A stretch of DNA of 64,000 nt from the NCBI RefSeq assembly GCF_023055435.1, contig NW_025963802.1, positions 17,546,001 to 17,610,000 on the forward strand. The letters run 5' to 3'. Position numbers and translations under genes: made by a program. The notes under the pieces were generated by a model. That model did no database searches. It worked only from the letters and a program-made list of their open reading frames with translations, and had not been told where the DNA came from. How positions within the stretch are numbered: position 1 is the first letter of the stretch; every line of letters begins with the position of its first letter. This document shows, in pieces, positions 27,854-43,913 of the stretch. Origin of the DNA: Haliotis rufescens (taxonomy: Eukaryota).

Positions 27854-27998
27854 ATGATTCCAAAACAATGGCTTCCAGGGGCATGTTTTCTGATTGGCTG
27901 TTTTGGGTTGGTGATGCCACAGCCCGTTGTCGGAATACAGTCGGCTAAAAATGACTTCGCTTTCCAGCTTCAACTCGACCGCCAGTTTGCGATAACAG
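27854..27998 (+). CDS. Peroxidase-like B exon 1 (signal peptide MIPKQWLPGACFLIGCFGLVMPQ...)
   Basis: Acceptor ttttacag at 27792, ATG 27854, donor G|gtatg. QLQLDRQFA parallels gene [10 protein letters not shown]. Confidence 0.8.
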
Positions 27999-42900: not shown

Positions 42901-43913
42901 CACCAATACCTTCCACGTCCAGAGAGATGCCTTCAGACTCAAGTCCGCATCGTACGTACGCATTTACGGGTTCATTCGGCTGATTTCGATACCCTAATAA
43001 CAACTTCGGGCAGCGATGCAGTAGGGATATTGCATGAATTCTCTTTCGTCTATGGGGCCGCAATTCGCTGTGCAGAGTTGCGTCCTTTAAGTGCGCCAGG
43101 AACCTATTATCATGAGACAGAATCCCGGTTCGCCCAGAATATATTTCTAGGTTTGTCAGCGCCATGCCCATGCTCGTGGGTTTCACCAAAGTGACCGTCT
43201 AAAACATTAACTCCGTCTGGCTTCCCCCCACAAGAATACAGCTAACAAACAGGCATTTCTTTGCAACGCAGCGCAAAACCAAATCAATCAGTCACGTGAC
43301 AGGACATTCATCCAATAACATGTACATGTACTTTCAGTCATCTTGAGTGTGGTTACAACATACTACTAACTTAGATAAAATGAAGTTTTGAAAAAGTTGT
43401 CAACATGTGAAAAATAAAATTAATTTAAGTTAATTTAACAAATTCTGTATACAGAGAGCTTAAACATTTTAACTTGCATTTTCTTGGCATCAAATTTCAT
43501 CACACTCACAAATACTTGCAATAAGACAAATGCATACTCTGGAAATGTGTGTTGAATATTTTTACAATGAAACAAGTCACATGGTACAGACATATATAGA
43601 GAATCCGTTATATGTTCCGCTACTCCAGAAACAACCGATTCTCTTGCTACAGACCTATATTGCAAACATGCGCATGTTAAATGTATTTCATGTATTTCTT
43701 GTCTCCAGGAATCACCGTGTCCCGTGTTACAGCTTGCCTCGTCTGGACCTGACCAAGTGGAGAGAACAACAGCCTCAGTGGTCAAGCTGGTCCGCCGCGT
43801 CAGACTGTTCAACCAGAGTTACCTTCCAGTTCCGGAGGAGGACGTGCATACCGGAAGAAGGTGGATGTCGCGGGCCGCGGGAAATGAGGCGCATGTGCCC
43901 GTCACGGGGGTAG
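27854..43913 (+). CDS. Secreted peroxidase-like protein B (peroxidase-cyclooxygenase superfamily; distal catalytic residues lost; C-terminal TSP1-like repeat), 11 coding exons, ~711 aa
   Basis: Exons 27854-27998, 29638-29764, 32072-32289, 33907-34086, 35490-35568, 37206-37312, 38476-38577, 38966-39665, 40642-40811, 42849-42951, 43709-43913 join in frame (2136 nt including TAG), all GT-AG. Motifs: YRTADGSCNN, LPSARLVS, EQLNQRTAYIDAS, FMREHN, AFRFGHS, LAAFNIQRGRDHG, DIDLFTGG, GDRFWYE, LSRIVCDN. Confidence 0.92.
28272..28533 (+). mobile_element. Short retroposon family A
   Basis: 14-bp TSD CCCAGTGGGTTAAA; (AACC)n tail. Confidence 0.9.
28745..29090 (+). mobile_element. SINE family D
   Basis: Same core and (CA)n-containing 3' part. 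Confidence 0.8.
29127..29600. repeat. 76/77-bp tandem repeat (~6 units)
   Basis: CAAGAACC starts at 29127, 29204, 29281, 29358, 29435, 29511 and 29587. Confidence 0.95.
29638..29764 (+). CDS. Peroxidase-like B exon 2
   Basis: tgtag|...GG|gtgagt; DVDSSRPSARASHTAFSGSGAIARALG is homologous to gene A exon 2. Confidence 0.85.
30259..31481 (+). mobile_element. Decayed mariner (Tc1/mariner) transposon
   Basis: TA-flanked TIRs CGAGGGCTGGTCAAAA / TTTTGACCAGCGCTCG; ARWVPKFL and TGDETWVYHYD motifs; frameshifts, internal deletion and a SINE insertion. Confidence 0.92.
31033..31198 (+). mobile_element. Short tRNA-derived SINE family C inserted in mariner
   Basis: A box TAGCCTAGTGG, B box GGTTCGATTCCC, TSD TGTTGATTACT. 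Confidence 0.9.
31761..31928 (+). mobile_element. SINE family C
   Basis: Nearly identical to the 31033 copy; TSD CTCACCRAA. Confidence 0.9.
32072..32289 (+). CDS. Peroxidase-like B exon 3
   Basis: YRTADGSCNNLNNPTWGMSNTPQRRYLLPKYNDG; donor gttagt. Confidence 0.92.
33310..33853. mobile_element. Same MITE family, intron 3 of gene B
   Basis: Long TIR GCAAGAGAGTTAACTGACT...CTTGCCGAA. Further pieces at 36030-36390 and 36819-37150. Confidence 0.82.
33907..34086 (+). CDS. Peroxidase-like B exon 4 (distal helix, QWGLFLALD)
   Basis: PRTRG..DPLPSARLVS...TQWGLFLALDITSTP; aag| acceptor, gtgcgt donor. Confidence 0.9.
34105..34380. repeat. Imperfect (GT)n microsatellite
   Basis: GT-rich run following exon 4. 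Confidence 0.9.
34385..34866 (+). mobile_element. LINE 3' fragment
   Basis: TPNYTVYGELGR, and FRTSNHNLPIETGKW near 34810. Confidence 0.7.
34867..35299. other. Two assembly gaps (34867-35034 and 35119-35299)
   Basis: Runs of N. Confidence 0.99.
35490..35568 (+). CDS. Peroxidase-like B exon 5
   Basis: ttttatacag|GLDGRPLTCCPEDLPP...|gtact; phases 1/2 fit both neighbours. Confidence 0.8.
37206..37312 (+). CDS. Peroxidase-like B exon 6
   Basis: CFPIDIPQGDRFFRRRCMHFPRS, the typical CFPI.IP..D.F....CM.F.RS motif. Confidence 0.9.
37911..38172 (+). mobile_element. SINE family B
   Basis: B box GGTTCGAATCCC, body and (CACT)n tail. Further copies near 2615-2817, 12320-12460, 17410-17630, 32790-33070, 36395-36582, 37350-37563, 40836-41020, 43055-43190, 49975-50105, 53601-53832, 58110-58330, 60000-60135 and 63330-63430. 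Confidence 0.85.
38476..38577 (+). CDS. Peroxidase-like B exon 7 (Ca2+-binding loop)
   Basis: EQLNQRTAYIDASPLYG. Confidence 0.92.
38966..39665 (+). CDS. Peroxidase-like B exon 8 (proximal His/Asn; lacks GDxRxNE segment)
   Basis: GLLKTS runs directly into MGVSSIQTIFMREHN; AFRFGHS; NIQRGRDHG; donor AA|gttagt. Confidence 0.93.
39757..40002. mobile_element. Pogo/Tigger-like MITE with an internal ~97-bp tandem duplication
   Basis: ACCTCGTTAGTCTGGAAACC repeated at 39765 and 39862; right end GGATTAACGGGGATTGAGTGTA. Confidence 0.5.
40378..40605 (-). mobile_element. Short retroposon family A (intronic)
   Basis: Similarity to other copies. Confidence 0.78.
40642..40811 (+). CDS. Peroxidase-like B exon 9
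   Basis: DIDLFTGGVSE...[25 protein letters not shown]; donor gtgagt. Confidence 0.92.
41075..42480. repeat. 109-bp tandem array of a MITE-derived monomer (~13 units)
   Basis: About 10 near-identical units from 41391, preceded by 2-3 diverged ones; homologous to the MITE at 57329. Confidence 0.95.
42849..42951 (+). CDS. Peroxidase-like B exon 10
   Basis: QLLEIRKTTLSRIVCDN...QRDAF. Confidence 0.92.
43709..43913 (+). CDS. Peroxidase-like B exon 11 (end of peroxidase domain plus TSP1-like tail)
   Basis: NHRVPCYSLPRLDLTKW, then WSSWS..SDCS...QFRRRTC...GCRG...RMC, stop TAG. Confidence 0.88.

Follow-up and report, generated by a model that had tools for sequence, protein, structure and literature searches.

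Animal haem peroxidases depend on a small set of residues: myeloperoxidase (MPO) cannot do without Gln91, His95 and Arg239, its Asp94 is linked to the haem by an ester and its Asp96 is a Ca2+ ligand, and in haem peroxidases it is the His-Arg pair that effects the heterolytic cleavage of H2O2 (PMC3533774). The question raised by the locus in this report is what becomes of such a protein when the distal side of its haem pocket has been dismantled. The gene in question lies in Haliotis rufescens (genome size 1.33 Gb) within a stretch of 64,000 nucleotides, G000:C24:17546001-17610000, which is called the window here. It occupies positions 27854-43913 of the window on the plus strand, and its product is the RefSeq protein XP_048249368.1 (P0151), 711 residues long and annotated as “peroxidase-like”. 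We think it likely that the gene is functional and long-lived, and that it encodes a probably secreted pseudoenzyme of peroxidase fold that is incapable of peroxidase action.

Loss of the distal site

The gene model is exact. A script that accepted only exact matches, with introns limited to GT/GC..AG, mapped P0151 to the window at 100% identity and found one solution only, so that the 11 exons and uninterrupted reading frame of about 711 codons proposed in the initial annotation are precisely the RefSeq model. The coding sequence is 2136 nt including the stop codon, and its 10 GT donors and 10 AG acceptors are all canonical. Exons were used singly in searches, and the full-length analyses were made on P0151, which equals the 11-exon translation. 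A search with the translation of the large exon led to H. cracherodii P0001 (XP_071090965.1), which is 97% identical and in the same 90% cluster as P0151.

In residues 207-215 the family reads QWGQFLDHD and P0151 reads QWGLFLALD. The distal Gln has become Leu210, the ester Asp Ala213 and the distal His Leu214, and the Ca2+ ligand Asp215 is kept; HMMER places Leu210, Ala213 and Leu214 opposite the Gln, Asp and His of lactoperoxidase (LPO). The codons are CTG, GCC and CTC, compared to CAG, GAT and CAT in the neighbouring paralogue P0155, and one second-position change suffices for each of the three residue changes.

The distal Arg and the ester Glu are absent for another reason, a 30-residue in-frame genomic deletion in exon 8. 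HMMER leaves LPO residues 208-261 unmatched, opposite 9 residues of P0151, and the exon sizes show where the deletion fell: the 12 exons of P0155 measure 136, 130, 212, 180, 79, 107, 102, 84, 715, 170, 103 and 205 nt, and the 11 of the P0151 gene 145, 127, 218, 180, 79, 107, 102, 700, 170, 103 and 205 nt. Of the ancestral 84-nt exon, only the first 17 nt (..LLKTS) are left in the 700-nt exon, which goes on with the ancestral large exon from its base 24 (MGVSS..); the fusion junction is at 38982|38983, and the MGVSS side begins ATG GGG. Thus, 67 exon nt, the intron and 23 nt of the following exon are gone, which amounts to 90 coding nt and preserves the frame. With the 30 deleted residues went the distal Arg, the ester Glu and both cysteines of the loop. 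The AlphaFold model of P0155 shows the deleted residues, 322-351, as a loop that ends directly ahead of a helix starting at residue 352, and in the P0151 model the corresponding helix begins at residue 330, so the deletion appears to have removed the loop cleanly and to have spared the core helix.

The alignment to LPO and the paralogues agrees with the earlier statement that none of the five distal and ester positions is retained, and it refines the manner of the loss: Gln, Asp and His were substituted, but Arg and Glu were removed by one exon-fusing genomic deletion and not by substitution. The functions that the initial annotation gave to the distal residues of MPO agree with the literature for Gln91, Asp94 and Asp96 (PMC3533774). 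The ester Asp and Glu positions vary in some active relatives, and so their loss is not decisive by itself.

The sequence just past the deletion has a feature of its own. Residues 322-381 (38983-39160), a tract that begins at the deletion junction, have a nucleotide identity to the neighbour of 0.80-0.88 compared to ~0.6 elsewhere, and a synonymous third-position identity of 34/47 compared to 166/335 elsewhere. This may be an old gene-conversion tract with the neighbour; we report it as possible only, because the scan-wide permutation p is 0.05.

Retained features and predicted fold

Outside the distal site, P0151 keeps almost every conserved column of its family. The Ca2+ site is kept, as Asp215 together with the motif TAYIDAS, and the Thr, Asp and Ser ligand columns are present in all five sequences of the orthologue group that is described below. 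The proximal motifs FRFGH, with the proximal His, and NIQRGRDHG, with its Asn partner and a conserved Arg, are both present, and the R-H-N-R pattern, whose Arg columns align with MPO Arg333 and Arg424, is kept in 5/5 of the group. There are 18 cysteines, an even number, and all of the conserved ones persist except the two in the deleted loop. Every motif that the initial annotation had listed as persisting (Ca2+ ligands, FRFGH, NIQRGRDHG and most cysteines) was therefore located in P0151. The alignment has 109 columns with a conservation of at least 90% among about 190 relatives, and P0151 keeps 97 of these. Of the 12 that are lost, 11 lie in or next to the distal motifs, namely, those of the distal Gln and His, seven positions of the deleted loop and two just after it; the twelfth is a change of Thr to Leu in the GPTF motif, in the C-terminal part of the domain.

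The Pfam family PF03098 (An_peroxidase) matches P0151 with E = 1.9e-155 and 518.9 bits against a cut-off of 25, in two stretches split at the deletion. Single exons also match PF03098; exon 4 alone had no match when searched against solved structures. An AlphaFold model built on an 80-sequence alignment has a mean predicted local distance difference test score (pLDDT) of 91.3 and a predicted template modelling score (pTM) of 0.88. With this model, Foldseek retrieved proMPO, MPO and LPO at E ~1e-41, with template modelling (TM) scores of 0.79-0.83 (normalised to the target). The structure prediction, one of the checks that had been suggested at the outset, is thus a confident MPO/LPO-like fold, and it predicts that the peroxidase fold survives the deletion.

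Residues 10-21 are hydrophobic (mean Kyte-Doolittle value, 2.48), a stretch that is conserved in the orthologues, and this signal-like N terminus suggests that P0151 is probably secreted. At the other end, the tail encoded by exon 11 aligns with the WSxWS tails of the paralogues, some of which carry PF00090; in P0151 the repeat is below Pfam detection.

Orthologues and the course of the loss

Besides the H. cracherodii orthologue (96% identical), a search with P0151 gave orthologue-like proteins from H. asinina (P0152, at 67% identity) and from H. rubra (P0153, P0154). A tree of 56 proteins was built with IQ-TREE and Shimodaira-Hasegawa-like approximate likelihood ratio test (SH-aLRT) supports, and in it P0151 and these four proteins are monophyletic (SH-aLRT 100); the sister of the five is the neighbour P0155 (99), and the next sister clade consists of P0016, P0178 and P0194 (98). 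None of the four abalone species has the distal His, ester Asp, Arg or Glu. In H. asinina and H. rubra the distal His is replaced by Phe, the ester Asp by Val, the Arg by Pro (Gln in one H. rubra copy) and the Glu by Ala, Gly or Leu, and the loop is 16 residues shorter, compared to 30 in H. rufescens and H. cracherodii. The H. asinina copy and one of those from H. rubra retain the distal Gln. The expectation that related species would show the same losses is borne out in that three further Haliotis lack His, Arg and Glu, partly via different lesions.

The two H. rubra copies lie on the same 2.3-Mb scaffold. The C terminus of P0153 is truncated, and P0154 has an unrelated N-terminal extension and keeps 90/109 of the conserved columns; P0154 may be a decaying duplicate or a poor gene model.

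Because the loss is common to all sampled species, the duplication and at least the loss of the His predate the split of the sampled abalones, and the residues and deletion sizes that differ between lineages fit a stepwise erosion of a site that was already not working. In the history that we propose, the gene would have been born by duplication within a local peroxidase cluster before the sampled abalone lineages split, and the distal side of the haem pocket would then have been dismantled in steps, beginning with the loss of His and ester Asp seen in all four species. In the lineage of H. asinina and H. rubra, Arg and Glu would subsequently have been replaced and the loop shortened by 16 residues; in that of H. 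rufescens and H. cracherodii, the exon-fusing deletion would have taken all 30 residues of the disulfide-stapled loop, Arg and Glu among them, and Gln would have become Leu. The Arg may have been lost either once, before the two lineages parted, or twice, in parallel. The rest of the fold would have stayed under purifying selection, namely, the Ca2+ site, the proximal His-Asn-Arg set, the remaining disulfides, the signal-like segment and the thrombospondin-like tail. For the time scale, Haliotis has Late Cretaceous fossils, and the Turbo-Haliotis split is placed near 111 million years ago (PMC13575190).

Rarity among relatives

The loss of the distal His is rare. In a survey of 198 related proteins of 500-1100 amino acids (aa) it is replaced in seven, five of which are P0151 and its orthologues; the others are the scallop protein P0075 (XP_021365530.1) and an ENA protein. 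Six more rows of the survey are gapped at this position, being truncated proteins. In the H. rufescens genome a search with exon 4 found the P0151 gene once, as a single-copy gene, and it is the sole exception among 27 copies of the exon, since Asp-His-Asp is intact in all 26 other paralogue copies with a readable motif.

An_peroxidase matches in the genome number at least 106. An array at C24:6.89-7.16 Mb holds about 20 near-identical copies spaced at ~14-15 kb, and further arrays are found at C24:40.4-41.4 Mb, C112:5.49-5.74 Mb and C68:26.05-26.11 Mb. Several of the arrays other than the first have in-frame stops within the matches.

Possible function

With the distal His-Arg pair gone, classical peroxidase activity should be lost, and without heterolytic cleavage of H2O2, P0151 would act by binding and not by catalysis. 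Two forms of such a pseudoenzyme seem to us about equally probable. In the one we prefer, haem would be held non-covalently on the proximal side, with an open, hydrophobic distal face; in the other, P0151 would be a haem-free extracellular scaffold or adhesion protein. The proximal ligand set, invariant in 5/5 sequences, is compatible with continued non-covalent haem binding, but it says little for haem in particular, because nearly all conserved columns outside the distal site are kept as well. Among the roles suggested in the initial annotation, regulation of the neighbouring paralogue finds no support in any of these results.

Unlikely on balance, though worth keeping in mind, is an extracellular haem protein of a different kind, which would hold haem by its proximal side only, beneath an opened, hydrophobic distal face, and would serve as a carrier, buffer or sensor of haem, of gases or of small hydrophobic ligands. 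Such a protein might act in the mantle or shell-forming space, where the sister paralogues appear to work. If this were so, P0151 would be a natural “distal-site knockout” of the MPO/LPO fold, tens of millions of years old and with a new physiological role.

We regard it as more improbable still that P0151 has acquired a different haem chemistry, as a neofunctionalised enzyme or sensor that acts on organic hydroperoxides or O2, or that binds gases or other small ligands at a five-coordinate haem in a hydrophobic pocket. The invariance of the proximal His-Asn pair and of the two Arg columns in 5/5 sequences, on a tree whose length is about one change per site, would be in keeping with this, as would the retention of the fold and of the Ca2+ site and the consistently hydrophobic nature of the distal replacements (Leu, Ala, Thr, Val and Phe). 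However, the two lineages do not agree at the distal positions, where even the two closest species diverge (Ala versus Thr), and they have lost different amounts of the loop, a pattern that looks like relaxation and not like a newly built active site. Nor is the proximal conservation specific, since almost every non-distal conserved column is kept.

Constraint after the loss

A gene that has lost its active site might instead be dying, in this case as an unexpressed or dispensable duplicate whose open frame survived by chance, helped by favourable gene prediction. The family is very large, with at least 106 An_peroxidase matches in the genome and numerous copies that carry stops, so redundancy is plausible; the rate on the deep branch is raised, no close short transcript-derived fragment was found, and H. 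rubra P0154, with its 90 of 109 conserved columns and odd N terminus, looks damaged. The comparison of H. rufescens with H. asinina, whose differences all postdate the shared loss, speaks against this, because a neutral sequence would give no gradient with conservation and a steep one is found. The two species differ at 87/174 (50%) of the columns that are <30% conserved and at 5/102 (4.9%) of those that are ≥90% conserved, with 36%, 22% and 18% in the intermediate classes (chi-square p = 6e-15; lowest versus highest class, Fisher p = 1.8e-15). Two catalytically intact orthologue pairs have the same gradient. The ratio of nonsense to missense single-base changes for the P0151 coding sequence is 0.043-0.048, and among the 233 amino-acid differences there are 0 stops compared to the 10-11 expected under neutrality (P ~2e-5). 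Recent divergence has been no faster than in intact paralogues, with 96.0% identity between H. rufescens and H. cracherodii compared to 88.3-97.1% in 12 intact paralogue pairs, and the orthologue models of H. cracherodii and H. asinina are full length. With 20/20 splice sites canonical and the lost conserved columns confined to one functional site in addition, we consider decay very unlikely. The central claim of the initial annotation, that a selective loss in a maintained gene and not random decay explains the sequence, is strengthened by the loss in four species, the gradient (p ~1e-15), the lack of stops and the normal recent divergence.

Several points nonetheless weigh against a maintained pseudoenzyme. 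The selection tests are at the protein level, and H. rufescens and H. cracherodii by themselves differ too little for constraint to be visible (p = 0.19). Deep divergence is raised, with a tree path of 0.50 compared to 0.14-0.31 and an identity of 67% compared to 78-86% in intact orthologues, which shows partial relaxation or adaptive change, so that for a time the constraint was relaxed or redirected. The orthologue sequences come from automatic gene prediction and may hide frameshifts, and the open reading frame was verified on DNA in H. rufescens only. A search of short transcript-derived fragments with the exon 8 translation gave none above 48% identity, which says little, as abalone runs seem poorly covered. 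Nine strings from the H. rubra orthologues, eight of them within single tryptic peptides predicted from those orthologues, were absent from the shell-matrix supplements of H. laevigata, a weak negative given incomplete files; one string from the intact neighbour was likewise absent, again a weak negative. Finally, haem binding by P0151 is putative. Accession numbers were also sought in papers, with no match.

Assembly gaps

Two runs of N interrupt the gene span, both inside intron 4; they begin 781 nt past the donor and end 190 nt ahead of the acceptor. The junction of exons 4 and 5 (..TPIRTG|LDGRPLTCC..) is identical in the H. cracherodii orthologue, which comes from an independent assembly, and it aligns gap-free to the paralogues; exons 4 and 5 of the neighbour have equal sizes (180 and 79 nt) and equal phases. 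On these grounds, exon 4 reads on into exon 5 in frame, with no coding sequence lost between the two. That the loop or the catalytic residues have merely been concealed by the N gaps, a skipped exon or sequencing errors is scarcely credible, even though the span has two gaps and the gene one exon fewer than its neighbour, since the gaps lie well away from the loop site, which is in exon 8, nothing of the loop survives in intron 7 (alignment score, 21; shuffle mean, 21.7), the LLKTS|MGVSS junction lies inside one continuous exon, and the independent H. cracherodii assembly shows this deletion too, together with distal replacements of the same type.

Gene structure and surroundings

The features of the window are listed in Table 1. 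The open reading frame fragment in intron 2 is probably a transposon relic, and the 540-aa frame on the minus strand may represent either a gene of one exon or a piece of a mobile element.

Table 1. Features of the P0151 gene and its surroundings (window positions)
Feature	Position	Strand	Basis or remarks
Exon 1	27854-27998	+	Splice mapping of P0151; start codon, hydrophobic signal-peptide-like N terminus ACFLIGCFGLVM
Exon 2, helical pro-region	29638-29764	+	Splice mapping; confident AlphaFold helices over residues 25-111
Exon 3, An_peroxidase domain begins	32072-32289	+	Splice mapping; PF03098 positions 1-34
Exon 4, altered distal motif	33907-34086	+	Splice mapping; PF03098 positions 44-98
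QWGLFLALD codons (207-215)	34035-34061	+	Alignment to LPO and paralogues; family reads QWGQFLDHD
Two N runs, 34867-35034 and 35119-35299	34867-35299		Inside intron 4 (34087-35489); 84 read bases between the runs
Exon 5	35490-35568	+	Splice mapping; size and phase as exon 5 of neighbour
Exon 6	37206-37312	+	Splice mapping; comparison with neighbour gene
Exon 7, Ca2+-site motif TAYIDAS at 38502-38522	38476-38577	+	Splice mapping
Exon 8, ancestral exons 8 and 9 fused; FRFGH at 39268-39282, NIQRGRDHG at 39514-39540	38966-39665	+	Comparison with neighbour
Exon 9, family-conserved RGDRFWYE segment	40642-40811	+	Splice mapping
Exon 10	42849-42951	+	Splice mapping
Exon 11, end of peroxidase domain, thrombospondin-repeat-like tail (WSSWS..C..C..C), stop	43709-43913	+	Splice mapping
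Sister paralogue XP_048249365.1 (P0155), exons 1-3: 3289-3424, 2470-2599, 1026-1237	1026-3424	-	Exact splice mapping
Large satellite-like array, intergenic	12924-15067		66 bp x 33
Satellite-like array, intron 1	29113-29600		77 bp x 6.4
Open reading frame fragment, intron 2	30687-31016	+	Weak match to PF01359, mariner-type transposase (E = 0.0023, below cut-off)
Tandem array, intron 9	41129-42476		109-bp unit, 12.4 copies, 97% matches
Large satellite-like array, just downstream of gene	44548-48242		47 bp x 79
Unbroken 540-aa open reading frame	54275-55897	-	Ser/Arg/Lys-rich; no Pfam match

P0155 is catalytically intact, has 12 exons and stands head-to-head with the P0151 gene, with ~24.4 kb between the two first exons. 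It was mapped on G000:C24:17530001-17549800, and the part beyond exon 3 lies upstream of the window, reaching G000:C24:17534458. Four more minus-strand peroxidase genes are found in G000:C24:17449956-17541438 and form a local cluster with the P0151 gene. Two of the four, with the exon 4 motif QWGHITDHDITH, belong to a clade that resembles an abundant shell-matrix peroxidase of H. laevigata; genes of the P0016 clade sit in this same cluster (C24:17.45-17.54 Mb), and, compared by eye, that clade is similar to the peptides of idb_25746, an abundant shell protein of H. laevigata (PMC6003135).

Comparison with known systems

Inactive homologues of animal haem peroxidases are already known, in PXDNL and the DUOX domain, and their roles are largely unknown. 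As a specialist case of a known phenomenon, the P0151 gene is of moderate value and introduces no new principle. It is an unusually clean natural case, in which all of the distal catalytic residues are gone, partly by a single exon-fusing deletion, and the adjoining intact sister gene permits a direct comparison. It could reveal what uses the peroxidase fold has once peroxidase chemistry is gone, and whether the proximal side is enough to retain haem. It also serves as a warning for annotation, in that the “peroxidase-like” genes of large mollusc expansions are not all enzymes.

The closest relatives are the neighbour P0155 and the P0016 clade (57% identity), which have the same pro-region. 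The exons of P0151 and P0155 are alike in size and phase except at the deletion. P0155 and the P0016 clade differ from P0151 in keeping the Gln, the Asp-His-Asp, and the Arg/Glu loop with its two cysteines, and the C-terminal tail of P0155 has lost the WSxWS pattern that P0151 keeps.

Peroxinectins are secreted invertebrate members of the family with a non-catalytic, integrin-type adhesion role, and they keep their peroxidase activity and catalytic residues. P0151 resembles them in having an RGD, at the conserved ..RGDRFWYE site, but RGD or KGD is common to most of the paralogues, so this is not evidence of a special adhesive role for P0151.

The peroxidase-homology domain of DUOX1/2 has the peroxidase fold without classical catalysis and serves as an extracellular structural or regulatory module. 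DUOX1 chains match the P0151 model in Foldseek at a lower score (TM score to query, 0.58-0.60). Unlike P0151, which is free-standing and keeps its proximal ligand set, the DUOX domain forms one chain with a membrane NADPH oxidase, and its haem-ligand histidines are changed as well in mammals.

In the scallop protein P0075 of Mizuhopecten yessoensis, annotated as “chorion peroxidase-like”, Gln, Asp and His are replaced by Thr, Val and Leu, but unlike in P0151 the distal Arg and the loop are kept. P0075 sits with a Pecten sequence on a distant long branch, which indicates an independent loss, and inactive peroxidase homologues may be recurrent in molluscs.

Human PXDNL (hsPxd02) is secreted, intact and expressed in the heart, and it is enzymatically inactive via active-site changes, with no known function (PMC8533639). 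It is without the distal Gln and the ester Asp, and all peroxidasins, including the group of PXDNL, keep the distal His-Arg pair (PMC3533774). PXDNL and P0151 thus belong to the same superfamily, and inactivity through active-site change is predicted for P0151 too. The differences are that P0151 is without both His and Arg, along with the ester Glu and their loop, and that it has only a pro-region and a thrombospondin-like tail, compared to the LRR, Ig and VWC domains of PXDNL. The two are of different lineages and independent origins, and P0151, which belongs to the single-domain mollusc peroxidases, is the more radical case.

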